Positions 22,273 to 64,000 are shown, numbered from the stretch's first letter. The stretch is DNA of 64,000 nucleotides from Syncephalis fuscata S228 (GCA_025786725.1 JAHLTZ010000040.1:116980-180979), one strand, 5' to 3'. Notes: generated by a model not told the origin, from the sequence alone. A program made the numbers and translations.

Positions 22273-24530
22273 TTTATAGTATTGACTGACAGGCTCCACA
22301 TCTTACAATCTACGTCATCACATTCCATTTATCTTTCTTCACACTTGATAGTATATATCCATTGTATATGATTGTACATTTCATATATACCAATTAGATA
22401 GTGCCAGTAGTAGACTAACTACTAGTCGAATATATACACTTGTTATATCACTGTACTTTAATCTTATCTTTCTTGTAAGTTACATTCATCACTCGTATAT
22501 TGGTACTAACGCATTCATTGGCATAATAACTGTGTTTCAGCTTTGTTTTATGCTCCTTTGGCTATGTGCGCTTTCATTTTTTCAGCAATTACCTTTTATT
22601 TTCTTCATTATTTAAAAAATGCCATTTGTTAACATGTCTCAAGCACTGGTGTTTTTAGCGCAACAATTAGTGTTAGTTTTTACATGATTAACTCGGCATG
22701 TTGTGCAATATAATTTAGTAATCCTATTGTTGTGTTGCCATGTATTGGTTTATTTGATCTTAAAATAAACTTGAAATAAAGCTTTTTACTACAATAATTG
22801 AATATAACTCAACATCAGTAAAGGTAGCTAAACATAAACATTGCCCTATGCTTGTTATTAAATAACTGGTTTATAGAATTACGTTTATACACAAATACAA
22901 ATGCCAGTGCAAGCTGACTACTTACCATGTTTTGTAACAAAAAAATAAAATAGCTTGTGTAATGTGGTCACCACTTCTGACTCTACTGCTGCGCTAAACG
23001 TTGCTAAGCCTTTGAATGTGTTTTTCCGACAGCTAAGCATATATTTACCACGCTCAAACATGTGACAATACAATCTCGGCAATAGGTGAATAAGCGTTGT
23101 ATTTCAAGAAGAATAAAATCGAACATTCCTGGTCTATTTTTATTTTTGCATTCTATTGGTCTGTGTCTATTCTTGATAGCGACCATTTAGCTTTTTAAAG
23201 CCCGAAAACACCAACATCTAGATTGATCATTGTGTTAATCGTGTGATAGACTACTACACATCGTGGCTGGCACGGCAATCTTAATGCGGATTGCTACACG
23301 TCACCCACCTTTGTTGTATCACCATTACTGCAGCCACTTTCCAACAATCTATGTTCCAGCTACAATGGCATGAGCAAACTGTTGACAGCTGTGTATGATT
23401 AACAGATATACACTAGTTATTGTAGATATACTGTATTGTTACTGTTAATAAAATAATGACATGTATATTAATTGCGCAAATATTTACGAATGTGTGAAAA
23501 AATAGCATAAAAATAGAACTTTGACAAGAACTAATGTAGAATGGATTTTGTTACAAATTTGGTAGTCGTAAGATACCTTTGTTCGTAGAATCGCAAAGTT
23601 AAACGGCAGCTTAGCAAAGGCAATGCTAAAAATAAATTTGGATGTACAGCAAAATGATGCATCATTACACAAAGCGGAAACCAGTCCTAATTCAATGGGC
23701 AATATTGATGTTTGTCAAGCGAGTAGGAAATGCTAATTTATGTATAAAAGCAGGACATGATTTGAAGTAAATTGTTAGTTCTTTACTACACAACAAGCAT
23801 CTTGCATTGAACATTCATTCATTCATTCATTGTCTATAACAATTGTTTATTCTGCTATCTAGCACTTTCTGCATTCAAGCTACAATCAAAACAACTCATT
23901 CATCATGGTCCGTGCTGCTTTCATTAAAACTGCCTTGGTCCTCGCTGTTGGTGCCGCACTAAGCGTTGAAGCATTCCCAAATAAGCCTTATGGTCAACAT
24001 AATGGTCAATATTATGGCCAGAAAGGATCAATTGGTCTTGGTGACACCTGCAATAATAATGACATTAACCGCTTGTGCCGAACAGATCAACAACCATTAA
24101 AATGTTTACCTAGAACTACCGGAGGTATTTCATTCTGCGTTACGGTTTCTCAGCTTGGTCAAACTTGTAACGAGAACGCCCTATGCGCTGGTAATTTGAA
24201 GTGTTCTGTTGGATTATTCCAAGGAAACGGTGTCTGCGTTCAAACCTACCGGCCTCCAACAACCTATTAATCGGTTTAAGCTTAATACTTTGATTTGTTA
24301 ATAAAAGAAGTGTTTTATACAATTGCTGTCTTTATTTATATCATCAATCAAATAATAATAGTGCCATTTATATGCTACTGACTTTTTTACCATAGGATTA
24401 TTATATATAATTGGTAGTTTTTGCTATAAAGGTACTACTATTATTAATAGTTGTTGGTCTTTTACTTGGTAATAATTATTTATTCATATCCTATGTGCAG
24501 ACTTATCATTTAATTTGTATTACGATATTA
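22273..24530 (+). repeat. Tandem duplication unit copy 1 (upstream region + secreted Cys-rich gene + 3' flank)
   Basis: Matches 25531-27735 at an offset of about 3258 nt; both start tttatagtattgactgacaggctcc. Confidence 0.95.
23905..24270 (+). CDS. Small secreted cysteine-rich protein A (121 aa, 8 Cys), effector/toxin-like
   Basis: Signal peptide MVRAAFIKTALVLAVGAALSVEA; two GxxC..C..LxC..C modules; TATAAAAG at about 23743; intronless. Confidence 0.9.
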   Translation: MVRAAFIKTALVLAVGAALSVEAFPNKPYGQHNGQYYGQKGSIGLGDTCNNNDINRLCRTDQQPLKCLPRTTGGISFCVTVSQLGQTCNENALCAGNLKCSVGLFQGNGVCVQTYRPPTTY

Positions 24531-24834
24531 TAAAAAAATAATATTTGTTTATTAAATAAAGATAGCTTTTGAAAACATTAAGGAATTATTAAACCGTTCG
24601 ATGTGATTTGATAATGTCCGTGTAGTTAAATTAAACGTTCATTCTATTAAATATAAAGCTGGGTGGTGAACAATGTTACTGATAAAATCGTCTGATTGCA
24701 TCGTAGTGGAACACCATATTTGACTGACATAATGTGTGTGTGTGTGAAATCCATGTTCTGGATTCCTTTCTCTTTACCACACATTCGCACAGACTACCTT
24801 TTCTACCAAACAACAGCTGTATATTCTATTCCTT

Positions 24835-25298
24835 ATGTCTATTCGTGCCGACTCGACCTTTGAGCCTCGTGAGGAAGACGACGGGTTTTTTGCGCCCCAA
24901 CAAAAGTGCACTACTATTACCGGGACAGCTGCTGCGCTCTTACGGATAAAGAGCTTATTATCTATTCGTATTTCGCCCCGGGTATCTCCAAAACACTTGC
25001 GTTAAGTGATATCGAATCGGCATATACTGACCGCGAGTTGGACCTGCCCTGGTTCTCGCGAAAGTTCAACGGGCTATCGAGCGACGGATCCACTTGGTGG
25101 GCACTTGACTGGCACCGTAGTTTGCCCTTTATCAAGGAGGCGCGCGACTGTGTGTTGGTCACTGTAAAGAACGATTGGTTGCGCAAAGGCTTTTCTGTTG
25201 AAGATTCAAAACGATTCATGGTACTACTTCGTGATGCAATCAAGCAAGTACGCAAAAACACCACTATGGAACGTCATAACACTGGTCAGTCGATTTGA
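24835..25298 (+). CDS. Intronless 154-aa uncharacterised protein, possibly PH-like fold (1-nt deletion near 24900 in this copy)
   Basis: Intact mirror ORF at 63154-63618; motif pattern YRD..LT..LII..YF.PG.SK.L.LSDI..WWALD..R. Confidence 0.75.
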
Positions 25299-25530
25299 AC
25301 AAACTGATTAAATTGTATTTAGTTAAATGTTTATACTTGCAGTAATGGCTATATATTTTATACATGTTTATTCTATTGTTTATATGTACAATGTTCTATA
25401 ATAATGCTATTTAGTGTTAAATAAGATTTATATTCATTACATTATTACATTTAATTTATTTTATGATATACCGACTTGTATAGTTTGGCTTTATTATTCA
25501 CCCTTCGCTTGCTACCATTTTATTTAAGTT

Positions 25531-29089: not shown

Positions 29090-29212
29090 ATCAACACAAT
29101 AAAAGAATAAACGATTGAAGGAATAAACGAGTATAATGTTGTTTTCACACTCTCTTTTAAATCACAACGCGCCCACGCGCTTCATTAAAACCAAAGATCA
29201 GCAAATAACCCA

Positions 29213-30408
29213 ATGTCAACGGCCAATGCCCGAAGTGTACTTAAACGGGCCCGTCTAGCCCGAGAACAACAACGAAAAGAAGGTTCTAGTCGCGATGATG
29301 GTGATCACGACACTACAGAACCCATTCAAGAATCGAGGCGTATTCAATCGCCATTAGCCCGCTATGATACACAAGGCCGTCTCAGCTGTGCTATTTGCAA
29401 AGTAGTTATAAAGTCATCGGTAGATTGGCCTGCTCATTTAACATCCAATAGTCATCAAGCAACAATAGAGCAATTACGCAAACTTAAACGCTCCTCTACC
29501 GAGAAAAACACTTTTAACCAAGAAGAAGAAACAAGCGAACCAAAGAAGCTAAAGACATCGAAGGATACATTTACCGCACCACGACCTATTTCTAAGCGCA
29601 AGATTACTTCTTCTTCTCTACCGTAGATCATAGTACATCAATCTCTTCAGTATCAATTGAGTCTATTAAAACAGAAGATACATCAACTGTTAAACGAAAG
29701 CGTATTCATAAATCAAATACTGATGAAATGGAATCAGATACAATTTATATGGAATTAAATGAACATGATCAGACTACAACGAACGTAGACGAATTGGATA
29801 GTAAACATCAATTACCGGCCAATTTCTTTGATACAACACCAGTCAATGATGAATCTGTTAATGTAAATACTACAAACAATACACAACATTTACCCAAAGG
29901 ATTCTTTGATAATGCTAGTCAAGAGGATAAAGTAAGACGTGAACTTGGTATAGATGCCACATCTACGGCTACACCACTATCACAAGATACAATGGATCTA
30001 GAATGGAAGCGATTTCAACAAGCACTTGGTGATACAACAACAACAACAACAACACAGAGTATAACACAAGCAATGGCACCATCAATAGAACCATCTATTA
30101 AAACCGAACCACAAGAAAAGGAAGAACAAGAACAAGAAGAACAAAATAATAATGACTTGAATCCACTGGCATTACTTCAACGCAGATGGGAAGATGAAGA
30201 AGAACAAATGCAAGACTGGAGAGATCGATTGGATGTGTTACAATTGCGTGCAGCAGAGACACGTTCACGATTAGTAACCACTACTACTATAACAAGTAGT
30301 ACACTTCAACAGAATACAGATATGAATGAAGATGAAGATGATAGTGAAGATGAAGATATTGATTTAGATAATTTATTATTGGATTGGAGAACACAGCAAC
30401 TAAAATGA
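29213..30408 (+). CDS. ZNF830: ZNF830/CCDC16-like zinc-finger splicing factor (1-nt deletion near 29617 in this copy)
   Basis: IQSPLARYDTQGRLSCAICKVVIKS..WPAHL..SH, LPKGFFD, EWKRFQ, acidic tail ending DWR. Confidence 0.8.
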
Positions 30409-30481: not shown

Positions 30482-31000
30482 TTATGAATGATGATAATAA
30501 GATCGATGTGATCCATGACTATCATTATTATTGTTACTATTATTGTTATTACTGTTATGGTGGTTATTATTATTATGTCGATAGTGTCGATATCCACTAT
30601 GTTGTTGATGATGACCTCTTCCTCGATGAGATGTATCATATCGATGTTGGGTTGATGTATATGAATACTGATTGGATGGTGTATCTTCATTATAATTAGG
30701 CCGATAATCACTATTCATAGTATTCTTGTAGTTATGAGAAGAGAAACGACGAACCGATCTAGATTGATGTTGTTCTTGTTCATTACTATGATGGCTGTTG
30801 TTGTTGTTGTTGTTGTTACTATGATCATAGTAATTATAGTTACTATTGGATGGATGTCTTGGTGGTGGTGGTGGTTGATATGTGTGGTGGTAATTAGATC
30901 TTGTATCGGCCGTAGATGACATATCCGTATCATGATAATTACTATTCATATTACTATTCAAGTTACTATTCGTACTATTTAGGTTATTATTATTATTTAG

Positions 31001-31036
<36 letters not shown>

Positions 31037-34000
31037 AGTGTAGTCAGATTCATAAGGATGATATTTATCTGGTTCAGTAAAATCCCATGTCCGTGTCTTG
31101 GGTACCGGTAATGGATTGACACTTGCTATATTAGAGGCGATACTATTCGTCGTTGATTGTGCTTGAATAGCCTTTTGTAATGCTTGTAATAAAGCAGGTG
31201 ATAATCCAGTATGACCAGATGGTATATTGGTTGTTGTTGTTGTTGTTGTTGTAGTAGTATTGGTAGGTGGTGGTACGGCTAATGATGTCATATATTCATT
31301 TGTTGACATACTAGGAGGATTAATAGTGGTGGTGGTGGTGGTTAAAGGACGAATAGTCGATACAGGATGATTTAATTGAGCTAGTAATTGAGCTACTGAT
31401 GTATTAGGCGATAGTAATCCACCACTATTTGTACTATTCGTATTAGTATTAATACTAGGTAGAGGTGTAGTATTGTTACTAATCGTATTGATAGAAGTAA
31501 TAGAAGTAGGTGTTGAAACTAATGGTACTCTATAAATAGTAGGTTGTTTATGATCACGACTATCTGGTTGATGCTTCACTCTATTGATATCACTCTGCAT
31601 CTTATTATTACTACTACTACTAATACTACAACTAGTAACAGTAGAGAGTGATTTGGGTTGATGCCATACAATAATACCGAGTAAATAATGATGTGCTGTA
31701 TGGATATCCACTTTATAATCGAGTAAGTCAATAAAAGGTGGCAATTTAGACTGATTAGTAGCAATAGGCACAATATACATATCCTTAACCGAGGATAGTG
31801 TATAGCCTATCACGCCATATCGCTGTCTTGTACTAAAATAGGACCATAATAGATCGTAGGCCTCTTGATACACATGAGAAAGGGGATCAAATCGCACGAG
31901 CAGTAACTGTTTACTACTAGATGATTTGATAATCTGGGTCAAATAGTCATCGGTACGGTTAACGTGGATACGGCCATCAATAGACAGGGCTGCCGGTAAT
32001 AAATCCGCCCACGATGATCGACTCAATTGAGTGGCCCCGGCCACTTGACATGCCGTACATTGTAGATCGGTGACATCAGGCATAAATAATCTACCTTGCC
32101 ATATCACATCGACTGGATCACTACTAGCATCAATCAGTACTGGTTCTAGATCATAATCTGCAAATGGATCATTATCGTCATCGTCATCATTATCATTAAT
32201 ATCGATATCAATGTCATCTGCTCTTATTACATGATTTATATTAGTAACAGACAATGATGCATTATGGTTTAATAAAGTATAATCTCTATTCTGTTCCTTC
32301 ATCGCTTCATCATGAATAGTTGACAATAATGGTGGTGGTGGCGATGCTGATGCCGATATTGAGGAGGCAATTGTCATGAAATCGTCGGGTAATTCCAATT
32401 GATTAACATTAAAATCAGCTAGAGGAGAAACAGGACGTGAACCACTTTTAATATGACTAGTGGTAACTGCTTTAATGGCTTTATCGTCATCGTCATCATC
32501 ATCTTCTTTAAATGGCTTTAATGTACTGGTTGATTCAAATCGATCAAATACTTTATCAAATTTAGATAGTGCATCTTCATGCTCATCTTTACTACTATGA
32601 CTATGACTCGTAGTAGTAGTAGTAGTATAACTATCGGTAAATGTGGCTGTCACTGGCGTAGTGGCTAATGATGTAGTGGCACTATCTCTATCTCTATGTC
32701 GATTAGAGGATTGACTATGTGTAGGAGTTGGTTGTGATGATGATGATGATGGTGGTGGTGGTGGATGATTATCTTCATTATGAGGACGTGTATCACCCAG
32801 CATCGTTTCACCTTTATGGGTTTTTTTAACATAAGCGGATAGATCAATATCTTCAATAATAGAATCTCTAATGCCTTGTTCGCGTACATCTTGGGCTAGA
32901 TTACGTAGTTCTTCATTGGCCATATCTTCATTACTCATACGCACTAATACAGAAGAGGTCACTTGTCCGGAGAGTACACGAAAGCGTAACGAGTTATTCT
33001 TCTTGTCATTTAAACTGAATATAAGACTGCGGTATTTGTTCTTATAATCTTGTCCACATCGACCATGTCCCACTCTATCTGATCTATCGGCCAAGTAATG
33101 GAATAGTGCTTCTTCAATATCCTCCGCATGGGCTTGTAAGTCTTCATCGGTGACTTTAGAGACATCTGTCTTGCCTTTCTCTCCTGCTTCTTGTAGAATA
33201 TTCTTAAGGGCACCGGTTAGTTTATTGACCACCATACGGCGTAGTGGATCGGGACTATGATGGACACTGGCACTGGCACTGGCACTGGCACTAGTACTTG
33301 ATGTTGTACGGTGATGGCCAATGGTAGTGGGACTTGTATCGATACGCGTTAATTTAGGTCGTGTTGATTTAGATTTAGAACGGATGGGTATATTCTCTTC
33401 TTCTTCTACATCCATATCATCTATACCTTCTGTATCATCCTCTTTATTTTCTTCATTCTTATAATCGTCATCGTCATTACTGGTATCTCGTCTCGTTTTG
33501 AATAATCCACTTTTGTTATGAAGTGTGGCATGACTATTACGTCGTGTGGCTTGTTTCTTAGTTATGCTCTGTTCTTCGATATCTTGTTGAGATAGACGAC
33601 GTCGACGTTGAGATGGTGGGCCTGTAGCGCGGTTACGAGGTGGTGGGAATGATAGACCATTGGCCTTTAATTGAACTACTTCAGGACTGTGTTCACATTC
33701 AGCACTGCAAAATGCTGTCCAATCCTCGGCATCATGTGAACAAGAAGGACGAGCACATTTGATAGTACTTGATGTCTATATTAATATTAATATTAATGTT
33801 GGGTTATTATATATATTATATATATTATATTATATTATATTATATTATATAAAAGGTACTTACTGGTGAATGACTTGACTTGTCGTCATTATTACTTATT
33901 ATAGCTGTTGATTCAGGACTATCTTGTTGATCTGAGTTAACAAAGGTTGCTATAATTAATATAAATAGTATAAATTGGTATAAATAGTATAGATTAGTAT

Positions 34001-34724
34001 TTGTTATATATATATATATATATCAATAGCTTACGTTTCATAGCATTCTTGCCCGCCTTGCCTCCAATACCTGGTAGTGTCGATATACATACAGGACAGT
34101 AATAGGTAGTGATTTTAGCCACTTTACCCTTGGTTAATCCAACACATTTAGCATGGTACCTATATTATACATATTAGTTATTAATTATTTGATGATTTGG
34201 TTATTTAATATAAATACTTGCCATTCAGAACAGCCATCACAACTAATCATAACAGTGCCATCATCTGGTTTACGACATAGACAATATAGTTTATCGTCTT
34301 CTATATCTTCTTCATGTTCATGTTCTTCTTCTTCTATATCCTCTACTTGTTCAGTAGTTGCATCAATGACTTTACTGTTATCATTGATACTATTTATGAC
34401 ATCATTTTCTGTTTGTTGGTGGTGGATTGATGTATCGAGTGATTTAACCGCTTCAACATATTGAGCAGTTAATTTACGGGCCCTTTTACTTCTTCTAATA
34501 GGGCCTGTTTCTTGTTCCACTGCTATAGTGTTGTTTTCATGGTGGTTGCTTAAATCGCTACTCTTTATCATTGTTACTTCAGAATCAATACCATTGGTAG
34601 AGCCATTTAATGGCATGTCTTTAGAAAGAATACACGATTCCTCTCCTGCAACAGCAATACTATCCATATCATAAGTTAGGGGAGGTGCTTGTTGCGGTTC
34701 TGATTGATCGGTCATATCCGCCAT
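30482..34724 (-). CDS. BYE1: PHD + TFIIS-central + SPOC protein (Bye1/DIDO1/PHF3 family), 4 exons
   Basis: LYCLCRKPDDGTVMISCDGCSEW|YHAKC; YKNKYRSLIFSLNDKKNNSLR..LVRMSNEDMA; SPOC IWQGRL..IDGRI..RQRYGV..VKDMYIVP. Confidence 0.9.
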
Positions 34725-35111
34725 GACACTCGTTGATAATGGCTGTCACAGCGATTGTAGTAGTAGTAGTAGCAGTAGTAGTTAACTATACTAATAGATC
34801 GCAATTCAATAGAAATACTATCGCTAATACTATCGTCAACGACAGATCAAGAATAAAAGTCACTACAAATGGGTTGAGTTGGGTGGTTTAATGCAAAGTA
34901 GCACGGTAAATGTAAGAAGTGTAATAGTTGTGGTCCTTAAAAATATTGTTAAAATAGACCAATGGTTCTGATTTAATAGATAAATAGAAAGAGTGAAGAA
35001 ATCATTGTGAATTTCCATTGTGTATTACAATTACAATTACAATTTATTATTATATTGTATATTATATTGTATATTATATTGTATATTATTATTATAATGA
35101 CAGTGTTGACT

Positions 35112-36086
35112 TTATTGTTTGCCAAGACAGACAAAATAGATTTCTGCAGAATCTTTTCGAGAGGCCATGGGTTTTTCTATTAATACTTTACGGAATAAGC
35201 CTTGTAAATGGCGTCTAAAGGTTGGATCACCTCCATCCATAAATACCTATATTATAATATATTACATGTTATTTAGTATAATATTATGAATATGCAATAC
35301 GTACTTTGCAAATAAACGTGCCTTCTTTTCTTAAATGTTGTTGGGCGAATTCTAATGCTGCTTCACATAATTCCTATTATTATATATTATTATAACATTA
35401 ATATATATATATAACTTACCATAGATCTTGCTTGATCAACTGTTCTAATACCTATTGATATATATATATATTAGTGGTCTATTAATGATATATACGTGTT
35501 ATTATTATGTACCAGATAACGAGGGTGCCATATCTGATAGTACAACATCAACGGGTTTATCGTCTAATAGTTTGGCCATACGTTGTGTTATTTCATCGGT
35601 TCTAAAGTCACCTTCAATAAAATGAACACCAGTGATAGGAGCCATTGGTAGTAGATCAACGGCTATAACAAGTCCTTCATCCTCTAGTTCTTCGTCGTCG
35701 TCGTCGAGTCTATTTGACTCGGTGTCTGGTGTTGCTATTCTATAGTGGATGCGTGGTTTTTCTGGTTTGACAGCATTACGTAAAATAAGTTCAGCGGCTA
35801 CCTGGCTCCAACCACCTGGACTCGAGCCGCAATCGACACACCGGCACCCCGGCAATAGAAAGCGATGCTTTTCATGCAGTGCCAGTAGTTTATAGGCACT
35901 CCTTGTGCGGTAGCCGTCGGCGCGGGCTTGTCGGGCATAAATATCGTCGCGTTGTCGCTGCAGCCACCGATTAGACGAGCCAGACCTACTATGGGCCATA
36001 GCTATGCCATACGTAGACAAATAGCGTCGCATAGCCCAACCACTACTACTACTACTACTACTCGGCATTAACTTGGCCATAGCCAT
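35112..36086 (-). CDS. MRM2: Mitochondrial rRNA 2'-O-methyltransferase (FtsJ/RrmJ)
   Basis: SNRWLQRQRDDIY..GYRTRSAYKL, DCGSSPGGWSQ, VDVVLSDMAP, KPMASRKDSAEIYFVC. Confidence 0.92.
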
Positions 36087-36186
36087 GTAATTGAGTTTAT
36101 GTTGGTGGTGGTAATATACGCTGTGCAACATAATAAAATAGAAAATAACGCTCAAATATAATTTATTGTTGAAAAATAGCTGTTGC

Positions 36187-36844
36187 TCATTCCACTACTC
36201 CACCTTCGGCTACGACTAAAGCCAGATCCTTTACTGTATCGCGTACTTGATTTGCCAGCTCTAATAATAGACCTGTATAATAATGAAATAGTTGGTTTAT
36301 TGGCTTATTATTACTGTTAGAGTATTATGACCTACCTGTATTGGCTTGTGCGTCAGCAATAAGTGAAATAACTAGAGGTGGTCGCGATGCTTGCACTAAT
36401 TGATGTAGGCCTGTCATACAAGCGACCGTGCGATGACGGCCAAGTCCTAATTTACTAGCCTATAACTAAAATAAATAACACAATTATTAAATAGCATTCT
36501 ATTACCTGTTCGCTAGCTACGGTAAAAGTTGACGACATTGGAGGTTCGTGTAAGTTTTCTCGTGTCTGGTCGGTCATAGCTAGTCGTTTTAAATGAGTAT
36601 TGCTAACTTATAAAACCTTACACGCACCTTGTCCTAGAATAACGCCTTCGCGATCAGTTACTAAGCAGACAAGCAAGTCCCGCGGATGACTATGTGGGAT
36701 TTAGCTTATTGGGCCATAGTATTACTGTTCAATATATACTTACCAGGCGAGTAGTTGATGTAAATAGGATTCTAGCTCATCCCGCTGTTGTTGTTGTGCC
36801 TGAGATTCCTCAACCATTGATGAATCGCTAACATTGGTAGCCAT
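36187..36844 (-). CDS. LAMTOR3: Ragulator subunit LAMTOR3 (MP1), 5 exons; missed by ORF track
   Basis: Spliced: LVTDREGVILG..STFTVASEQ|ASKLGLGRHRTV..QLVQ..PLVISLIADAQANT|GLLLEL. Confidence 0.88.
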
Positions 36845-44725: not shown

Positions 44726-44800
44726 AAATGAATAATAGGGACCGTTATTAGTTTTATTATTAGCATATTTTGATTATTAAACAAAAATTTAATCGCTGTA

Positions 44801-47389
<2,589 letters not shown>

Positions 47390-49240: not shown

Positions 49241-51153
49241 ATGTCACTCGTGGCAATTTATTGTCATTGTTGTTTTTCATCAGCCAAATAATGCACCTGG
49301 CGGTTGGTGGAATAATTATGCGTACAAATAAGACAGTATTCAAGTTTAAAACGGCCGATCCATTTAGGATAGAGTTTGATTATTTTAACATTACTGGAAT
49401 GCTGGTCATCCCGGAATTCTATAATAATGTCGACTGCGAACTTAAAAAACTGCCTTTACCAGGCGAAACTATATCAGAAGTAAACACTCTGCCAAAGGAT
49501 GTTGCATCCATCATTTTGGTTTTTGAGCTCGAGAAACTAAAAAGCTACGGCTGTAGAAACATGCGACAGGTAATTGAAGTTTTGCTGTACTCCATGGTAA
49601 TCGAACTAATAATCTATTTTGCGTCTAAAGCTTGAGAAGACGTTAGATGATTACAAGAAATGGATAGTCAGCCGCAATTATCCCCCAGCCAGTGGTCTTT
49701 TATTTTTAAGACCTGCCTTCCGTAAAATCTCAGCATCTGTCGGCAGCTTCTTTAAAAGGTATACACCAAGTATTCCTATAGCATTGGCTCGTAATAAAGA
49801 TCTGAAAGATATTAGCAATGCAATGAAAATGCTAGAGTTTCCAGCTATAGCCACTATGACACAAGGTAGATTAAAAGCACCGATTTAATATATCAACTAA
49901 TAGCATGCCGATTAGAACCCAATGCATGGAAACGTTATATACTTTCACCGTGGTTCCAAACATTTATGTGGACATTCTTTACAATCAATGTCATTTTTAT
50001 TCTGCATGCTCTCGGCAGTTTTATATATATATGGTTGTTTGGAAGTCTCGAGGCCGACCTACGGACGCTGGCATTTGTGGCTGGCTTCTTAGCTGTCGTG
50101 CGTAAGTAGCAATAATACGTGGCATTTTTACAGCCTGGCTAATGTAGCTTTATCGCTATTCACAGTTGACTTAGTTGTTATTCCTAGTAACTTTGGAGAT
50201 CTAAGTTATCATATTATAATACAGATTTCTACGATACTATGCTCTATAGCTTTTTACTTTTTGCTTGTTATCTGGTATGTATAAAATGAATATGCAATAT
50301 GTAGTAAATTAACACTTTTTATTAATCAGGTGCTCCCTCAAACTCGGAAAGCAAATTGAACGTAGAATTAGGCTGTTCCGTATAGTCATTCACATCGGCT
50401 TTGCTATGCGGATAATCATACATACTGCAGTTCTTATAATAGTCGCCGTCGATTGTTATGATACAGACCATATTGTTAATATAATTGTTTACAATATACT
50501 TGGCTACTTCTTAATATCGCAACAACTATTGACAGCACTTATATTTGCCTATTTTAGTAAGTCATTTATTGGTGTATACAATTGCATATACAACTTCTAA
50601 TCAAATGTGTAGCTGTAGTTTTCTATCTTAGCATGAAGAACTGTATTAGCGAATCGCTTCGTAATGCTCTAGCTCGCGTAAGTATTTTACCGTTTATAAA
50701 CACCAAACTATTTGATTACTGATTTTTACTAATAATTAACTTGTATTCGATCAGTTGGCCATCATATCAACGGCTTCATTTGTTGCATTTCTTCTTAATA
50801 TTATTGATGTTTTCCTATTACTCAATCTTGAATGGTCAATCGATGCCGATAAAATGATTGCTCGACTTTCATATAACATCGTTGGCCTAACCATTGTATC
50901 GGCTGTTCTACTTTATGTGCTTGGTATCCGTATGCCAGATTATGGCAAAACTTCATCGGAAACAATTATTGTTAGTCCACTCTTTGCCTACCGACTTTTA
51001 TGGTCAGAGATTAAGGCACGGCTATTTAATAAGGTCGATGGCAAGCCCGATTTATCAATTGCTTCACCAGATAGTATTACAACACTATCTTATAAACGTT
51101 GGTCGATCCAACAATTGCTACTTATCAATGACCAACTTTATACATGTTTCTAA
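49241..51153 (+). CDS. 7TM receptor-like protein, inverted copy of paralog 1
   Basis: Mirror of 37285-39195; 1-nt deletion near 49256; several substitutions in the 5' part. Confidence 0.75.
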
Positions 51154-51595
51154 TAAATCAATAACTCTACACATACTTATACTATTTATTGTATAGTGTA
51201 TATATTTCAATAAGCCAAATAAGTAAAAATTAGCAATAATAAAGCTAGAGTCGAGCTGGCAGTGTCTCTCAGTAAAGCAACGCCAAGTAAACGTAAAACG
51301 GTATATATTAGCACAAATATATAATGCGAAGAATATGAATATTGGTGCTGAAGTTATAGCACATATAATAAAATAGTTAAAATCAGTAAAATGTATTAAA
51401 CATAATGAATATAGTTTGTTTGTTATTTATAAAGATGTATTGTTTTACTTGGCAAATGAGTGATTGTTTCAAATAATACACCATAACAATAACAAAAGTT
51501 CTTTAAATTCAAATGATAAACAACTTTAGTATCCATAGAATTAATATAAAACTTTACCTCCTTTACTTCTCTTTTTAATCTACTCGTTGTTTAAC

Positions 51596-52253
51596 ATGGC
51601 TACCAATGTTAGCGATTCATCAATGGTTGAGGAATCTCAGGCACAACAACAACAGCGGGATGAGCTAGAATCCTATTTACATCAACTACTCGCCTGGTAA
51701 GTATATATTGAACAGTAATACTATGACCCAATAAGCTAAATCCCACATAGTCATCCGCGGGACTTGCTTGTCTGCTTAGTAACTGATCGCGAAGGCGTTA
51801 TTCTAGGACAAGGTGCGTGTAAGGTTTTATAAGTTAGCAATACTCATTTAAAACGACTAGCTATGACCGACCAGACACGAGAAAACTTACACGAACCTCC
51901 AATGTCGTCAACTTTTACCGTAGCTAGCGAACAGGTAATAGAATGCTATTTAATAATTGTGTTATTTATTTTAGTTATAGGCTAGTAAATTAGGACTTGG
52001 CCGTCATCGCACGGTCGCTTGTATGACAGGCCTACATCAATTAGTGCAAGCATCGCGACCACCTCTAGTTATTTCACTTATTGCTGACGCACAAGCCAAT
52101 ACAGGTAGGTCATAATACTCTAACAGTAATAATAAGCCAATAAACCAACTATTTCATTATTATACAGGTCTATTATTAGAGCTGGCAAATCAAGTACGCG
52201 ATACAGTAAAGGATCTGGCTTTAGTCGTAGCCGAAGGTGGAGTAGTGGAATGA
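51596..52253 (+). CDS. LAMTOR3: LAMTOR3, inverted-repeat copy
   Basis: Mirror of 36187-36844. Confidence 0.88.
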
Positions 52254-52353
52254 GCAACAGCTATTTTTCAACAATAAATTATATTTGAGCGTTATTTTCT
52301 ATTTTATTATGTTGCACAGCGTATATTACCACCACCAACATAAACTCAATTAC

Positions 52354-53332
52354 ATGGCTATGGCCAAGTTAATGCCGAGTAGTAGTAGTAGTAGTAGTGG
52401 TTGGGCTATGCGACGCTATTTGTCTACGTATGGCATAGCTATGGCCCATAGTAGGTCTGGCTCGTCTAATCGGTGGCTGCAGCGACAACGCGACGATATT
52501 TATGCCCGACAAGCCCGCGCCGACGGCTACCGCACAAGGAGTGCCTATAAACTACTGGCACTGCATGAAAAGCATCGCTTTCTATTGCCGGGGTGCCGGT
52601 GTGTCGATTGCGGCTCGAGTCCAGGTGGTTGGAGCCAGGTAGCCGCTGAACTTATTTTACGTAATGCTGTCAAACCAGAAAAACCACGCATCCACTATAG
52701 AATAGCAACACCAGACACCGAGTCAAATAGACTCGACGACGACGACGAAGAACTAGAGGATGAAGGACTTGTTATAGCCGTTGATCTACTACCAATGGCT
52801 CCTATCACTGGTGTTCATTTTATTGAAGGTGACTTTAGAACCGATGAAATAACACAACGTATGGCCAAACTATTAGACGATAAACCCGTTGATGTTGTAC
52901 TATCAGATATGGCACCCTCGTTATCTGGTACATAATAATAACACGTATATATCATTAATAGACCACTAATATATATATATATATCAATAGGTATTAGAAC
53001 AGTTGATCAAGCAAGATCTATGGTAAGTTATATATATATATATTAATGTTATAATAATATATAATAATAGGAATTATGTGAAGCAGCATTAGAATTCGCC
53101 CAACAACATTTAAGAAAAGAAGGCACGTTTATTTGCAAAGTACGTATTGCATATTCATAATATTATACTAAATAACATGTAATATATTATAATATAGGTA
53201 TTTATGGATGGAGGTGATCCAACCTTTAGACGCCATTTACAAGGCTTATTCCGTAAAGTATTAATAGAAAAACCCATGGCCTCTCGAAAAGATTCTGCAG
53301 AAATCTATTTTGTCTGTCTTGGCAAACAATAA
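52354..53332 (+). CDS. MRM2: MRM2, inverted-repeat copy
   Basis: Mirror of 35112-36086; identical ORF translation. Confidence 0.92.
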
Positions 53333-53722
53333 AGTCAACACTGTCATTATAATAATAATATACAATATAATATACAATATAATATACAATATAATAATAA
53401 ATTGTAATTGTAATTGTAATACACAATGGAAATTCACAATGATTTCTTCACTCTTTCTATTTATCTATTAAATCAGAACCATTGGTCTATTTTAACAATA
53501 TTTTTAAGGACCACAACTATTACACTTCTTACATTTACCGTGCTACTTTGCATTAAACCACCCAACTCAACCCATTTGTAGTGACTTTTATTCTTGATCT
53601 GTCGTTGACGATAGTATTAGCGATAGTATTTCTATTGAATTGCGATCTATTAGTATAGTTAACTACTACTGCTACTACTACTACTACTACAATCGCTGTG
53701 ACAGCCATTATCAACGAGTGTC

Positions 53723-56700
53723 ATGGCGGATATGACCGATCAATCAGAACCGCAACAAGCACCTCCCCTAACTTATGATATGGATAGTATTGCTGTTGCA
53801 GGAGAGGAATCGTGTATTCTTTCTAAAGACATGCCATTAAATGGCTCTACCAATGGTATTGATTCTGAAGTAACAATGATAAAGAGTAGCGATTTAAGCA
53901 ACCACCATGAAAACAACACTATAGCAGTGGAACAAGAAACAGGCCCTATTAGAAGAAGTAAAAGGGCCCGTAAATTAACTGCTCAATATGTTGAAGCGGT
54001 TAAATCACTCGATACATCAATCCACCACCAACAAACAGAAAATGATGTCATAAATAGTATCAATGATAACAGTAAAGTCATTGATGCAACTACTGAACAA
54101 GTAGAGGATATAGAAGAAGAAGAACATGAACATGAAGAAGATATAGAAGACGATAAACTATATTGTCTATGTCGTAAACCAGATGATGGCACTGTTATGA
54201 TTAGTTGTGATGGCTGTTCTGAATGGCAAGTATTTATATTAAATAACCAAATCATCAAATAATTAATAACTAATATGTATAATATAGGTACCATGCTAAA
54301 TGTGTTGGATTAACCAAGGGTAAAGTGGCTAAAATCACTACCTATTACTGTCCTGTATGTATATCGACACTACCAGGTATTGGAGGCAAGGCGGGCAAGA
54401 ATGCTATGAAACGTAAGCTATTGATATATATATATATATATAACAAATACTAATCTATACTATTTATACCAATTTATACTATTTATATTAATTATAGCAA
54501 CCTTTGTTAACTCAGATCAACAAGATAGTCCTGAATCAACAGCTATAATAAGTAATAATGACGACAAGTCAAGTCATTCACCAGTAAGTACCTTTTATAT
54601 AATATAATATAATATAATATAATATAATATATATAATATATATAATAACCCAACATTAATATTAATATTAATATAGACATCAAGTACTATCAAATGTGCT
54701 CGTCCTTCTTGTTCACATGATGCCGAGGATTGGACAGCATTTTGCAGTGCTGAATGTGAACACAGTCCTGAAGTAGTTCAATTAAAGGCCAATGGTCTAT
54801 CATTCCCACCACCTCGTAACCGCGCTACAGGCCCACCATCTCAACGTCGACGTCGTCTATCTCAACAAGATATCGAAGAACAGAGCATAACTAAGAAACA
54901 AGCCACACGACGTAATAGTCATGCCACACTTCATAACAAAAGTGGATTATTCAAAACGAGACGAGATACCAGTAATGACGATGACGATTATAAGAATGAA
55001 GAAAATAAAGAGGATGATACAGAAGGTATAGATGATATGGATGTAGAAGAAGAAGAGAATATACCCATCCGTTCTAAATCTAAATCAACACGACCTAAAT
55101 TAACGCGTATCGATACAAGTCCCACTACCATTGGCCATCACCGTACAACATCAAGTACTAGTGCCAGTGCCAGTGCCAGTGCCAGTGTCCATCATAGTCC
55201 CGATCCACTACGCCGTATGGTGGTCAATAAACTAACCGGTGCCCTTAAGAATATTCTACAAGAAGCAGGAGAGAAAGGCAAGACAGATGTCTCTAAAGTC
55301 ACCGATGAAGACTTACAAGCCCATGCGGAGGATATTGAAGAAGCACTATTCCATTACTTGGCCGATAGATCAGATAGAGTGGGACATGGTCGATGTGGAC
55401 AAGATTATAAGAACAAATACCGCAGTCTTATATTCAGTTTAAATGACAAGAAGAATAACTCGTTACGCTTTCGTGTACTCTCCGGACAAGTGACCTCTTC
55501 TGTATTAGTGCGTATGAGTAATGAAGATATGGCCAATGAAGAACTACGTAATCTAGCCCAAGATGTACGCGAACAAGGCATTAGAGATTCTATTATTGAA
55601 GATATTGATCTATCCGCTTATGTTAAAAAACCCATAAAGGTGAAACGATGCTGGGTGATACACGTCCTCATAATGAAGATAATCATCCACCACCACCACC
55701 ATCATCATCATCATCACAACCAACTCCTACACATAGTCAATCCTCTAATCGACATAGAGATAGAGATAGTGCCACTACATCATTAGCCACTACGCCAGTG
55801 ACAGCCACATTTACCGATAGTTATACTACTACTACTACTACGAGTCATAGTCATAGTAGTAAAGATGAGCATGAAGATGCACTATCTAAATTTGATAAAG
55901 TATTTGATCGATTTGAATCAACCAGTACATTAAAGCCATTTAAAGAAGATGATGATGACGATGACGATAAAGCCATTAAAGCAGTTACCACTAGTCATAT
56001 TAAAAGTGGTTCACGTCCTGTTTCTCCTCTAGCTGATTTTAATGTTAATCAATTGGAATTACCCGACGATTTCATGACAATTGCCTCCTCAATATCGGCA
56101 TCAGCATCGCCACCACCACCATTATTGTCAACTATTCATGATGAAGCGATGAAGGAACAGAATAGAGATTATACTTTATTAAACCATAATGCATCATTGT
56201 CTGTTACTAATATAAATCATGTAATAAGAGCAGATGACATTGATATCGATATTAATGATAATGATGACGATGACGATAATGATCCATTTGCAGATTATGA
56301 TCTAGAACCAGTACTGATTGATGCTAGTAGTGATCCAGTCGATGTGATATGGCAAGGTAGATTATTTATGCCTGATGTCACCGATCTACAATGTACGGCA
56401 TGTCAAGTGGCCGGGGCCACTCAATTGAGTCGATCATCGTGGGCGGATTTATTACCGGCAGCCCTGTCTATTGATGGCCGTATCCACGTTAACCGTACCG
56501 ATGACTATTTGACCCAGATTATCAAATCATCTAGTAGTAAACAGTTACTGCTCGTGCGATTTGATCCCCTTTCTCATGTGTATCAAGAGGCCTACGATCT
56601 ATTATGGTCCTATTTTAGTACAAGACAGCGATATGGCGTGATAGGCTATACACTATCCTCGGTTAAGGATATGTATATTGTGCCTATTGCTACTAATCAG

Positions 56701-57420
56701 TCTAAATTGCCACCTTTTATTGACTTACTCGATTATAAAGTGGATATCCATACAGCACATCATTATTTACTCGGTATTATTGTATGGCATCAACCCAAAT
56801 CACTCTCTACTGTTACTAGTTGTAGTATTAGTAGTAGTAGTAGTAATAATAAGATGCAGAGTGATATCAATAGAGTGAAGCATCAACCAGATAGTCGTGA
56901 TCATAAACAACCTACTATTTATAGAGTACCATTAGTTTCAACACCTACTTCTATTACTTCTATCAATACGATTAGTAACAATACTACACCTCTACCTAGT
57001 ATTAATACTAATACGAATAGTACAAATAATGGTGGATTACTATCGCCTAATACATCAGTAGCTCAATTACTAGCTCAATTAAATCATCCTGTATCGACTA
57101 TTCGTCCTTTAACCACCACCACCACCACCACTATTAATCCTCCTAGTATGTCAACAAATGAATATATGACATCATTAGCCGTACCACCACCTACCAATAC
57201 TACTACAACAACAACAACAACAACAACCAATATACCATCTGGTCATACTGGATTATCACCTGCTTTATTACAAGCATTACAAAAGGCTATTCAAGCACAA
57301 TCAACGACGAATAGTATCGCCTCTAATATAGCAAGTGTCAATCCATTACCGGTACCCAAGACACGGACATGGGATTTTACTGAACCAGATAAATATCATC
57401 CTTATGAATCTGACTACACT

Positions 57421-57456
<36 letters not shown>

Positions 57457-57975
57457 CTAAATAATAATAATAACCTAAATAGTACGAATAGTAACTTGAA
57501 TAGTAATATGAATAGTAATTATCATGATACGGATATGTCATCTACGGCCGATACAAGATCTAATTACCACCACACATATCAACCACCACCACCACCAAGA
57601 CATCCATCCAATAGTAACTATAATTACTATGATCATAGTAACAACAACAACAACAACAACAGCCATCATAGTAATGAACAAGAACAACATCAATCTAGAT
57701 CGGTTCGTCGTTTCTCTTCTCATAACTACAAGAATACTATGAATAGTGATTATCGGCCTAATTATAATGAAGATACACCATCCAATCAGTATTCATATAC
57801 ATCAACCCAACATCGATATGATACATCTCATCGAGGAAGAGGTCATCATCAACAACATAGTGGATATCGACACTATCGACATAATAATAATAACCACCAT
57901 AACAGTAATAACAATAATAGTAACAATAATAATGATAGTCATGGATCACATCGATCTTATTATCATCATTCATAA
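53723..57975 (+). CDS. BYE1: Bye1/DIDO1-like, inverted-repeat copy (homopolymer frameshift near 55630)
   Basis: Mirror of 30482-34724. Confidence 0.88.
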
Positions 57976-58048
57976 ATGATCTAAATGGATATATTTTTAT
58001 TTTATTATTATTATTATTATTACGATTTTGCAATTACAACTTTTCATT

Positions 58049-59245
58049 TCATTTTAGTTGCTGTGTTCTCCAATCCAATAATAAATTATCTAAATCAATA
58101 TCTTCATCTTCACTATCATCTTCATCTTCATTCATATCTGTATTCTGTTGAAGTGTACTACTTGTTATAGTAGTAGTGGTTACTAATCGTGAACGTGTCT
58201 CTGCTGCACGCAATTGTAACACATCCAATCGATCTCTCCAGTCTTGCATTTGTTCTTCTTCATCTTCCCATCTGCGTTGAAGTAATGCCAGTGGATTCAA
58301 GTCATTATTATTTTGTTCTTCTTGTTCTTGTTCTTCCTTTTCTTGTGGTTCGGTTTTAATAGATGGTTCTATTGATGGTGCCATTGCTTGTGTTATACTC
58401 TGTGTTGTTGTTGTTGTTGTTGTATCACCAAGTGCTTGTTGAAATCGCTTCCATTCTAGATCCATTGTATCTTGTGATAGTGGTGTAGCCGTAGATGTGG
58501 CATCTATACCAAGTTCACGTCTTACTTTATCCTCTTGACTAGCATTATCAAAGAATCCTTTGGGTAAATGTTGTGTATTGTTTGTAGTATTTACATTAAC
58601 AGATTCATCATTGACTGGTGTTGTATCAAAGAAATTGGCCGGTAATTGATGTTTACTATCCAATTCGTCTACGTTCGTTGTAGTCTGATCATGTTCATTT
58701 AATTCCATATAAATTGTATCTGATTCCATTTCATCAGTATTTGATTTATGAATACGCTTTCGTTTAACAGTTGATGTATCTTCTGTTTTAATAGACTCAA
58801 TTGATACTGAAGAAATTGATGTACTATGATCTACGGTAGAAGAAGAAGAAGTAATCTTGCGCTTAGAAATAGGTCGTGGTGCGGTAAATGTATCCTTCGA
58901 TGTCTTTAGCTTCTTTGGTTCGCTTGTTTCTTCTTCTTGGTTAAAAGTGTTTTTCTCGTAGAGGAGCGTTTAAGTTTGCGTAATTGCTCTATTGTTGCTT
59001 GATGACTATTGGATGTTAAATGAGCAGGCCAATCTACCGATGACTTTATAACTACTTTGCAAATAGTACAGCTGAGACGGCCTTGTGTATCATAGCGGGC
59101 TAATGGCGATTGAATACGCCTCGATTCTTGAATGGGTTCTGTAGTGTCGTGATCACCAATCATCACGACTAGAACCTTCTTTTCGTTGTTGTTCTCGGGC
59201 TAGACGGGCCCGTTTAAGTACACTTCGGGCATTGGCCGTTGACAT
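58049..59245 (-). CDS. ZNF830: ZNF830-like, inverted-repeat copy (indels near 58955 and 59160)
   Basis: Mirror of 29213-30408. Confidence 0.8.
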
Positions 59246-59368
59246 TGGGTTATTTGCTGATCTTTGGTTTTAATGAAGCGCGTGGGCGCGTTGTGATTTA
59301 AAAGAGAGTGTGAAAACAACATTATACTCGTTTATTCCTTCAATCGTTTATTCTTTTATTGTGTTGAT

Positions 59369-59999
59369 ATGAGTAACTCTCGTACACAGCCACGTCTTGA
59401 ACAATATCGTGAACATTTAGTAGGTCCATATAGTATATAGTATATAGCATATATATTATATGATACTGACTTTCAAACTGGCTTTTATAGAGTGCAAAGT
59501 CTGTCATGTCGGGTTCTTCTGCTCAACCGCCTATTACGTCACACGTTCTTGATACCGGACGTGGTCGACCAGCTGCCAATCTTCCGGTTTTGTTGGAATA
59601 TACGGGTTTATCTGTTACTAGTCATGCGGAAGCAGTAGCTTGGGCTGTTTTAGGAACAACGTAAGTTAATACTAGTGTTTATAAATAATTCGCATTGATG
59701 TATTGTGGATGGTGTTAGTCTAACTAATCAAGATGGTCGTTGTCCAGGACTAACAAAAAGTGGCGATACACTTCAGCCTGGATGTTATCGTGTTACTTTG
59801 ATACTAAAAGCTTATTATGCACAATTTAATGAAAAGTGTTTTTATCCATTTGTTCAGGTAAATAGATATAGCGTTGATGTTTATAAACTAATTAATATGG
59901 ATGATATAGATTGTATTTGAATTGACTGCACCAGAAGACCACTACCACATTCCGTTGTTATTAAGTCCCTATTCATATAGCACATATCGTGGCAGTTAA
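59369..59999 (+). CDS. URAH: 5-hydroxyisourate hydrolase, inverted-repeat copy
   Basis: Mirror of 28459-29089; ends YRGS*. Confidence 0.92.
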
Positions 60000-60975
60000 A
60001 TAATGATAATAATAATAATGAAGCGTATATTTGTTATATATATAAAGTGTTAATAGCAAGGATTATTGTTTTGTATAAATGATTCAATAAACTAAACAAA
60101 TTAGAATTATAAATAATTTATAGCTATAAAATCATATAATGATGAGTATTTTGATGATTGATATCATCCATCGCCTATTTTATGTTTAATACATTGAATA
60201 AAATTTAAAAAATAAAATATATAGTAGTTAATTAAATATTTTGATATCAATTTAATAAAAATTATTAATATTAATGACTTTAACTTATAACAATAGCTTA
60301 ATTAACATATTTATAACAAAAGTTATGATTGTAATAAATTTTGATATAAACTAAAATAAATTGATTATAAAAATGCATCTTTATTATTGTTTGAGTAACA
60401 GTATTGTATTTATAATATGTTGAATAATAAAAGTTACAAAGCTAAAAAACTTTGATGGAAAAAAGTTAACTACAATAAATGCAGCAATCTAATTTAAATC
60501 TTTATTTAAGTAGTTTAGTTACTTGTAACAATATTAACAACAATGCTAATTGTGTTTTACTTTTTAAAAACTTTCAATGATATACTTGTGGCAAATGCAA
60601 CTCAAAAAATATAGTACAAAATGAGTGTAAGGCAAATAAAATATGATTTATTTACTAAATAAATTTAAAAATGAGCATTTATTATGGTGAAATTAAAAAA
60701 CTGTGTATATAATAATATTGTAATACAAATTAAATAATCAAGTTGCACATAGGATATAAATAGATAAATTATTGCTAATTAAAAAGCCATTGAATTGTTA
60801 TATAATAACAATTCTTTTTATAGAAATAGCTACAATTAAATATAATGATTCTATGATAAAAACATTTAGTAGATTATAAATGGTACCGTTATCTTGCTAC
60901 TAATATAAATAAGCTAAAAACAGTAGCTGAACAAAGCTTTTTTATTAAGAGATGACAGTTTGAATGTTAAACCAA

Positions 60976-61312
60976 TTAATAGGTTTTAGGAGGTTGAGTG
61001 TATCGGGCAAACGCCGGTTCCTTGGAATGGCGCAACAGTGCAGTACAACCAGGGAGGACATATGTGGTTTTCGTCACAGGCACCACCCTCTTTGGAATTC
61101 AAAACACAGTAAGTATCACTTGTGTTTGGTCTGTTGGTGCAGACCAGGTTTTGATCTTCTCGACATTGACGGTAAAGATTGCCAGAGTAACCACAGCGTT
61201 CACCAAGACCAACATACTCCGGCTGGTAAGACTTATTTGGGAATGCTTCAACGCTTAGTGCGGCACCAACAGCGAGGACCAAGGCAGTTTTAATGAAAGC
61301 AGCACGGACCAT
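60976..61312 (-). CDS. Secreted Cys-rich protein B, inverted-repeat copy (2-nt deletion near 61005)
   Basis: Mirror of 27136-27474. Confidence 0.85.
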
Positions 61313-63153
61313 GATGAATGAGTTGTTTTGACTGTAGCTTGAATGCAGAAAGTGCTAGATAGCAGAATAAACAATTGTTATAGACAATGAATGAATGAAT
61401 GAATGTTCAATGCAAGATGCTTGTTGTGTAGTAAAGAACTAACAATTTACTTCAAATCATGTCCTGCTTTTATACGTAAATTAGCATTTCCTACTTGCTT
61501 GCAGTGTCAACATCATTCACCACATTTAAGACTATTTTCCGCTTTGTACAATGACGTAGCAGTTGCTATCCATCCATATTTTATTTTTAGCATCAATTTT
61601 GCGACTCGGCGGACAAAAATATCTCACGACTACCAAATTTGTAACAAAATCCATTCTACATTAGTTCTTGTCAAAGTTCTATTTTTATGCTATTTTTTCA
61701 CACATTCGTAAATATTTGCGCAATAATATACATGTCATTATTTTATTAACAGTAACAATACAGTATATCTACAATAACTAGTGTATATCTGTTAATCATA
61801 CACAGCTGTCAACAGTTTGCTCATGCCATTGTAGCTGGAACATAGATTGTTGGAAAGTGGCTGCAGTAATGGTGATACAACAAAGGTGGGTGACGTGTAG
61901 CAATCCGCATTAAGATTGCCGTGCCAGCCACGATGTGTAGTAGTCTATCACACGATTAACACAATGATCAATCTAGATGTTGGTGTTTTCGGGCTTTAAA
62001 AAGCTAAATGGTCGCTATCAAGAATAGACACAGACCAATAGAATGCAAAAATAAAAATAGACCAGGAATGTTCGATTTTATTCTTCTTGAAATACAACGC
62101 TTATTCACCTATTGCCGAGATTGTATTGTCACATGTTTGAGCGTGGTAAATATATGCTTAGCTGTCGGAAAAACACATTCAAAGGCTTAGCAACGTTTAG
62201 CGCAGCAGTAGAGTCAGAAGTGGTGACCACATTACACAAGCTATTTTATTTTTTTGTTACAAAACATGGTAAGTAGTCAGCTTGCACTGGCATTTGTATT
62301 TGTGTATAAACGTAATTCTATAAACCAGTTATTTAATAACAAGCATAGGGCAATGTTTATGTTTAGCTACCTTTACTGATGTTGAGTTATATTCAATTAT
62401 TGTAGTAAAAAGCTTTATTTCAAGTTTATTTTAAAATCAAATAAACCAATATATGGCAACACAACAATAGGATTGCTAAATTATATTGCACAACATGCCG
62501 AGTTAATCATGTAAAAACTAACACTAATTGTTGCGCTAAAAACACCAGTGCTTGAGACATATTAACAAATGGCATTTTTTAAATAATGAAGAAAATAAAA
62601 GGTAATTGCTGAAAAAATGAAAGCGCACATAGCCAAAGGAACATAAAACAAAGCTGAAACACAGTTATTATGCCAATGAACGCGTTAGTACCAATATACG
62701 AGTGGTGAATGTAACTTACAAGAAAGATAAGATTAAAGTACAGTGATATAACGACTGTATATACTTGACTAGTAGTTAGTCTACTACTGGCACTATCTAA
62801 TTAGTATATATGAAATGTACAGTCATATACAATGGATATATACTATCAAGTGTGAAGAAAGATAAATGGAATGTGATGACGTAGATTGTAAGATGTGGAG
62901 CCTGTCAGTCAATACTATAAAAACTTAAATAAAATGGTAGCAAGCGAAGGGTGAATAATAAAGCCAAACTATACAAGTCGGTATATCATAAAATAAATTA
63001 AATGTAATAATGTAATGAATATAAATCTTATTTAACACTAAATAGCATTATTATAGAACATTGTACATATAAACAATAGAATAAACATGTATAAAATATA
63101 TAGCCATTACTGCAAGTATAAACATTTAACTAAATACAATTTAATCAGTTTGT

Positions 63154-63618
63154 TCAAATCGACTGACCAGTGTTATGACGTTCCATAGTGGTGTTTTTGC
63201 GTACTTGCTTGATTGCATCACGAAGTAGTACCATGAATCGTTTTGAATCTTCAACAGAAAAGCCTTTGCGCAACCAATCGTTCTTTACGGTGACCAACAC
63301 ACAGTCGCGCGCCTCCTTGATAAAGGGCAAACTACGGTGCCAGTCAAGTGCCCACCAAGTGGATCCGTCGCTCGATAGCCCGTTGAACTTTCGCGAGAAC
63401 CAGGGCAGGTCCAACTCGCGGTCAGTATATGCCGATTCGATATCACTTAACGCAAGTGTTTTGGAGATACCCGGGGCGAAATACGAATAGATAATAAGCT
63501 CTTTATCCGTAAGAGCGCAGCAGCTGTCCCGGTAATAGTAGTGCACTTTTGCCTGGGGCGCAAAAAACCCGTCGTCTTCCTCACGAGGCTCAAAGGTCGA
63601 GTCGGCACGAATAGACAT
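63154..63618 (-). CDS. Intronless 154-aa uncharacterised protein, intact inverted-repeat copy
   Basis: Complete ORF; mirror of 24835-25298. Confidence 0.8.
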   Translation of the reverse strand: MSIRADSTFEPREEDDGFFAPQAKVHYYYRDSCCALTDKELIIYSYFAPGISKTLALSDIESAYTDRELDLPWFSRKFNGLSSDGSTWWALDWHRSLPFIKEARDCVLVTVKNDWLRKGFSVEDSKRFMVLLRDAIKQVRKNTTMERHNTGQSI

Positions 63619-64000
63619 AAGGAATAGAATATACAGCTGTTGTTTGGTAGAAAAGGTAGTCTGTGCGAATGTGTGGTAAAGAGAAAGGAATCCAAAACAT
63701 GGATTTCACACACACACACATTATGTCAGTCAAATATGGTGTTCCACTACGATGCAATCAGACGATTTTATCAGTAACATTGTTCACCACCCAGCTTTAT
63801 ATTTAATAGAATGAACGTTTAATTTAACTACACGGACATTATCAAATCACATCGAACGGTTTAATAATTCCTTAATGTTTTCAAAAGCTATCTTTATTTA
63901 ATAAACAAATATTATTTTTTATAATATCGTAATACAAATTAAATGATAAGTCTGCACATAGGATATGAATAAATAATTATTACCAAGTAAAAGACCAAAC

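Follow-up and report, generated by a model that had tools for sequence, protein, structure and literature searches.

Palindrome or folded assembly? A long, gene-bearing inverted repeat at a contig end of Syncephalis fuscata S228

Does the fungus Syncephalis fuscata S228 carry a large palindrome in its nuclear genome, or did the assembly of that genome fold back on itself? The question is raised by contig C307 (180,979 nt; GCA_025786725.1, JAHLTZ010000040.1) in an assembly of 29.36 Mb and 371 contigs. Its last 64,000 nt (C307:116980-180979; called the window below, and the reference for all coordinates without a contig name) contain two long inverted arms around a spacer. An earlier note on this DNA had named two alternatives, a genuine palindrome and two haplotypes joined head-to-head. 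Both survive our analysis, but the evidence within the assembly leans toward the palindrome, namely from a divergence gradient at the inner edge of the arms, from the existence of two arm types and from variation that ends at the repeat edge. We consider it somewhat better than an even bet (probability about 0.55) that the locus is a real chromosomal palindrome, i.e., an inverted segmental duplication with arms of at least 15.4 kb around an 8.7-kb single-copy spacer.

The inverted repeat and its inner edge

When the window was compared with itself using blastn, 24454-39869 aligned with the reverse complement of 63998-48599 at 98.674% identity, in an alignment of 15,465 columns that contains 91 mismatches and 86 gap openings. 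A repeat search of the window returned 24 inverted blocks between the arms, which are collinear. The inverted repeat is present in the assembled sequence, far above chance level. The earlier note had placed its arms at 24453-39908 and 48556-64000, with at least 15 kb each and a spacer of about 8.6 kb. This description holds with refined borders, giving arms of ~15.4 kb and a spacer of 8,729 nt (39870-48598). The right arm had further been said to run off the window; it is indeed truncated, but by the end of the contig, as base 64000 is the last base of C307. The place near 64.2-64.5 kb where the note would look for a mirror of 23905-24270 therefore lies outside the contig. Both the spacer core (42100-47400) and the left flank (7000-20000) are single-copy within the assembly according to contig searches, which rest on queries of at most 5 kb (queries of 8.7-15 kb missed their own locus, and an arm query missed a 12-kb match of ~99% to the small contig C138 described below).

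Substitutions between the assembled arms are unevenly spread, with about one in the stretch 29.7-36.7 kb and about 100 in the 1.1 kb adjoining the spacer. In 100-nt windows, the arms are fully identical up to 38.7 kb; their identity is then 98-99% as far as 39.3 kb, 85-96% as far as 39.5 kb, 79% between 39.5 and 39.6 kb and 63-70% as far as 39.9 kb, after which it falls to background. This is a graded decay rather than the sharp switch of an assembler, and it is expected of a palindrome homogenised by gene conversion. Repeat-induced point mutation was considered as a cause of the transition-rich edge and rejected, since the changes run in both directions and are limited to the edge.

The inner end of the left arm carries an orphan seven-transmembrane (7TM) receptor-like gene, called A, whose mirror image lies at the inner end of the right arm, beside the NDOR1-like gene of the spacer. 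Directly inside the right arm, 48108-48598 has no counterpart at the left junction. Because the right edge bears this upstream sequence of its own, which is homologous to a paralogous 7TM locus on C168, the right junction with its inverted 7TM copy beside NDOR1 is genuine sequence. The gradient and this private sequence show a real inverted repeat at the inner end of the arms, at the least. A tandem copy of gene A within the spacer, paralog B, and the right 7TM copy together form an inverted repeat, older and eroded, that encloses the CWC25-NDOR1 core.

A third copy and two arm types

C138 (15,176 nt) is a third assembled copy of the arm. It matches window 26642-42061 along its whole length and thereby includes left arm, left junction and 2.2 kb of the spacer. 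In a three-way alignment of C138, the right-arm sequence (R) and the left arm, private substitution sites in the arm body (28750-38700) numbered 37, 6 and 1, respectively. In the innermost ~1.2 kb of the arm, C138 sides with the left arm and not with R at all 99 sites at which the arms differ. R and C138 differ by 61 substitutions in ~11 kb, or ~0.55%, when counted over 26642-38700 minus the repeat-rich part 27750-28750. The ratio of transitions to transversions is 49:12, a bias that reflects a biological mutation spectrum and hence two genuinely different sequences. The two types also differ by two indels of ~290 bp and ~50 bp. The larger lies at 27800-28088, in or beside a dispersed repeat, and is present in both C307 arms and absent from C138; the smaller is a difference of C138 near 34000, in an AT-rich tandem stretch.

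As assembled, the two C307 arms resemble one another more than they resemble C138, and this likeness has a technical side, the left arm being a mixed consensus. In its C138-covered part (27750-28750 excluded) the left arm has 11 single-base gaps, and at nine of these the bases of R and C138 differ, the pair always being a transition (for example T/C at 26656, G/A at 26712, T/C at 37163 and A/G at 38581). Gap positions in the C307 consensus are 26656, 26695, 26712, 27130, 27564, 27584, 27716, 36869, 37163, 38444 and 38581. Since only 0.55% of positions distinguish R from C138, the coincidence of gaps and variant sites is not due to chance (~1e-19 for nine of 11 at this background, by a rough binomial estimate). 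At the variant sites, the left arm has the R-type base 43 times, the C138-type base nine times and a gap nine times; it is wholly R-type over 29.7-34.4 kb and mixed toward both ends. Because the gaps fall at sites that vary between R and C138, and because substitutions private to the left arm are nearly absent, the left arm is a mixture. Only two real arm types exist, the R-type and the C138-type, and the left arm of C307 is their mixed consensus and no third sequence. The near-identity of the assembled arms is overstated, since the left arm mixes both real types.

The simplest reading of the gaps is that the consensus caller dropped bases wherever two read populations disagreed. They look like a systematic consensus artefact, and the same artefact could explain recurring single-base frameshifts elsewhere in the genome. 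This changes the view of the many single-base indels that had been called error-like. They do exist, but in the stretch covered by C138 most of the left-arm gaps are consensus artefacts at polymorphic sites, while some of the remaining indels are ordinary homopolymer errors (e.g., T7/T6 in the BYE1-like gene). Two further claims of the earlier note agree with our comparison: the real-looking substitutions between the arms, confirmed at the BYE1 site at 31425, and the in-frame length changes of microsatellites, seen as 3-nt changes at 31325, 31608 and 34756.

The variation stops where the repeat stops. Over 38582-42061 (1.3 kb of the left edge and 2.2 kb of unique spacer), not one substitution and no gap of the mixture type separates C138 from C307, which are independent contigs; their only differences there are deletions in the ragged last 750 nt of C138. 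Thus, C138 and C307 differ at ~5.5 sites per kb within the arm versus none in the adjoining 3.5 kb of edge and spacer. The copies differ within the repeat only and not in the unique sequence next to it, as for paralogous variation. A direct repeat outside the arm (D1), an older paralog of a segment within it (D2), gives a further point of reference. The R-specific states at 26417, 26425 and 26965 agree with D1, and at 26965 the derived base is common to C138 and the left arm. The D1-like states of R and the shared derived base fit R being an independent copy.

Palindrome or misassembly

For a true palindrome, which we favour, the C138-type would be the true left arm and the R-type the true right arm, both on one chromosome. 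The structure may have begun as an inverted duplication seeded at the older inverted 7TM pair that brackets CWC25-NDOR1, or as an old palindrome, and would since have been homogenised. Gene conversion from arm to arm would keep the arms similar and fade over the last 1.1 kb by the spacer; if conversion tracts seldom reach the last kilobase, a divergence gradient would result. The arms would also be longer than most reads, as is suggested by the many contigs of about single-read size (at least 21 of 14.2-15.4 kb among C130-C152). A long-read assembler unable to separate such arms could then have produced the mixed left arm, left over the pure left-arm reads as C138 and stopped inside the right arm.

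Several observations weigh against this reading, and most of them concern the outer boundary, which is never reached. The right arm breaks off exactly where the contig does, and no divergence gradient was found at the outer edge. Among the other contigs of the assembly we found neither a right-flank contig nor the outer arm elsewhere nor a mirror of 7000-24453. The missing right flank shows that the assembly is incomplete at this point, not that the flank is absent. The left-arm sequence runs on beyond the point that matches the contig end, and no telomere repeat was found at the contig end, where the right arm terminates. An exact-protein look-up of a 226-aa open reading frame, aimed at independent contigs, returned nothing on record.

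The remaining counterarguments come from heterozygosity. Three of six sampled ~15-kb contigs are alternative versions of large contigs with a single counterpart: C133 matches C1 at 99%, C142 matches C350 with a 175-bp indel between them, and C151 matches C168 with an insertion of ~830 bp resembling a transposable element. The other three belong to multicopy or inverted regions. This suggests that the sample is structurally heterozygous. The 0.55% between R and C138 is similar in order to the divergence of the alternative contigs from their partners, as would be expected of alleles. Of four Zoopagomycota mycoparasites, three were described as highly heterozygous and not haploid (PMC6784888), and diploid dominance is frequent in Zoopagomycota (PMC9457484). 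At the locus itself, the only doubly covered unique stretch, C138 versus C307, shows no variation.

These points are what an allelic fold-back misassembly would draw on, an explanation that we regard as a serious though less probable one. The arm would be single-copy in each haplotype of a heterozygous diploid or heterokaryon, with R-type and C138-type as alleles. The real inverted repeat would be short (~1-3 kb) and consist of the 7TM gene and an inverted 7TM copy across the spacer, and recombination between these copies would have inverted the spacer in one haplotype. An assembler that came into the spacer along one haplotype and exited along the reverse strand of the other would then have created a false 15-kb right arm ending where the chains merge. 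Such a fold-back would account for there being only two real types, with the left arm as their mixture, for a right arm that ends with the contig and has neither a right flank in the assembly nor an outer gradient, and for alternative contigs with indels of transposable-element size elsewhere. However, ~12 differences would be expected in the 2.2 kb of spacer common to both haplotypes, because allelic variation of 0.55% would extend there, and none is seen. The fold-back would also require heterozygosity to end just where the repeat ends. Moreover, it calls for a 7TM-like copy next to some other right flank and for each spacer end to have a second junction. The assembly has one junction type at each end and no alternative spacer junction, and none of its contigs has other sequence attached to a 7TM-like copy or to the NDOR1 end. 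A real but more complex structure is rather improbable: an inverted triplication, a multi-copy amplicon with C138 as a third genomic copy, or a palindrome extending far into the left flank. Three assembled copies and the unseen outer boundary are in its favour, but a third genomic copy fits poorly with a left arm essentially without private variants, with the identity of C138 and C307 in the unique spacer, and with a left flank and spacer core that are single-copy in the assembly. Very improbable, finally, is a wrong turn or a chimeric read in a genome with one arm sequence, where left-arm reads were reversed into a right arm by fold-back or by an amplification chimera. The contig-terminal position of the palindrome and the near-identity of the central 7 kb of the assembled arms would fit, but two distinct, transition-biased types run along the whole arm to the contig end, and at the junction homology fades over 1.1 kb and the right-hand side has sequence of its own, unlike a sharp or microhomology join. 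In particular, a missed-adapter or amplification chimera was rejected, as an 8.7-kb spacer is ill-suited to a missed-adapter palindrome and a chimera would give a sharp join and a single type.

Under either model, palindrome or misassembly, the structure belongs to a known kind. The palindromes of the human Y and X chromosomes are large and gene-bearing, and their arms are kept alike by arm-to-arm gene conversion, with an identity of at least 99.9%. The S. fuscata locus resembles them in its arms (kilobases to tens of kilobases in the human case), its unique spacer, intact genes, high identity in the arm body and rising divergence at the boundary of arm and spacer. It differs from them in a true arm identity of only ~99.4%, in housekeeping genes instead of a testis-type family and in its fungal host; besides, conversion is deduced here from the gradient and not from a comparison across species, and the outer boundary lies beyond the contig. 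Inverted-duplication rearrangements, and origin-dependent inverted-repeat amplification in yeast, start from short inverted repeats, where the DNA folds back or the template is switched. As in those systems, an inverted segment copy seeded at pre-existing inverted paralogs would be involved, here the 7TM copies facing each other across CWC25-NDOR1. However, their junctions are sharp, their spacers measure tens to hundreds of bases, and triplications or terminal deletions are frequent, in contrast to the 8.7-kb spacer and the 1.1-kb gradient observed here. Long-read assemblies of heterozygous genomes are known for false duplications, such as retained haplotigs or a path that folds back at a heterozygous inversion. 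The duplicated segment at a contig end, the extra small contig, the mixed consensus with single-base gaps and the heterozygous-looking sample are all reminiscent of these, but here the adjoining unique spacer is without variation and the assembly contains no alternative junctions. In plastid-type inverted repeats, too, two long inverted arms flank a single-copy segment able to invert by recombination, whereas the present locus is nuclear, its genes contain introns, and nothing points to the presence of both isomers.

If the palindrome is true, an early-diverging fungus joins those organisms in which conversion maintains large palindromes that carry genes. More speculatively, S. fuscata may have several gene-rich nuclear palindromes of at least 15 kb kept alike by arm-to-arm conversion, this being one of them; such a fungal counterpart of sex-chromosome palindromes would carry BYE1, MRM2 and LAMTOR3 in duplicate and enclose a cassette able to invert, with receptor-like paralogs on its flanks. 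We put this forward tentatively and doubt it more than the palindrome itself. If the locus is an artefact, several housekeeping genes are falsely doubled in a public assembly (at least five families were identified), and a systematic class of error is flagged, consisting of contig-terminal fold-backs together with frame-breaking single-base gaps at variant sites. In either case, the mixed consensus of the left arm matters to users of these gene models.

Genes and repeats of the locus

The features of arms, spacer and junctions are collected in Table 1.

Table 1. Features of the inverted repeat locus in window coordinates (a dot in the strand column marks features given without strand).
Feature	Position	Strand	Basis and remarks
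Left arm, as assembled in C307	24454..39869	+	blastn self-match; three-way comparison with R and C138
Right arm	48599..63998	-	blastn self-match; ended by contig end
Spacer, 8,729 nt	39870..48598	.	blastn, Pfam; holds 7TM paralog B, CWC25, NDOR1-like gene, dispersed repeat and upstream region of right 7TM copy
Inner-edge divergence gradient, left side	38700..39900	.	Windowed identity; substitution list
Inner-edge divergence gradient, right side	48599..49740	.	C138 matches left arm at 99/99 sites
Upstream sequence of right 7TM copy, ~490 nt	48108..48598	+	67% identical to paralogous 7TM locus C168:75735-76219
Direct repeat D1	22270..23990	+	95% identical to D2 (25528-27221, within arm); D2 mirror at 61227-62921
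ZNF830-like C2H2 (zf-met) exon	29189..29623	+	Pfam, weak match
BYE1-like gene (PHD, TFIIS_M, SPOC)	30485..34745	-	Pfam
MRM2-like FtsJ methyltransferase exons	35115..36194	-	Pfam
LAMTOR3 (MAPKK1_Int) exons	36328..36889	-	Pfam
7TM receptor-like gene A, orphan, inner end of left arm	37147..39456	-	Repeat comparison; mirror at 48991-51292
7TM paralog B, tandem copy of A	39975..42311	-	blastn self-comparison; 76% identity to A; inverted relative to right copy
CWC25 splicing-factor gene, spacer	43320..44576	+	Pfam
NDOR1/TAH18-like gene, spacer	45137..47493	-	Pfam; flavodoxin domain begins in exon 47212-47493
Dispersed repeat, dozens of copies at 70-78% identity	47504..48023	.	Contig search; ~580 nt from right junction

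Besides the exons listed, an exon of HIUase was recognised in the arm through a weak Pfam match. No Pfam family was found for the 7TM genes and for a Cys-rich secreted pair. The frame of the right-arm BYE1 copy is broken into 249 aa and 775 aa by the T7/T6 homopolymer (32821 in the left arm, 55631 in the right arm); this split probably reflects a consensus error, not a pseudogene.

The match of D1 goes on at ~77% identity to ~24430. Two families of dispersed repeats occur in the window (25391-25812 and 22112-22552 for one, 47504-48023 for the other), with units of ~400-520 nt and dozens of copies genome-wide at 70-82% identity. Copies of the second family are often found in close inverted pairs, namely on C349, C101, C341 and C136.

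The left flank contains PanK4-like (Fumble and ARMT1-like domains), RPAP1-like and Zds_C genes at 9727-10845 (-), 18071-19963 (-) and 3845-5995 (+), respectively. When these genes (3.8-20 kb) were inspected for frameshifts as a sign of heterozygosity artefacts, their Pfam coordinates agreed with short introns. The Zds_C gene lies within an unusually GC-rich stretch (47%).

Elsewhere in the assembly, C304 has two inverted places, 15216-17032 (-) and 30256-33273 (+), both of which are matched at 97-98% identity by a small contig, and a further small contig matches as well (C139, C86). With at least three assembled copies, the C304 locus has the same pattern as the repeat of C307.

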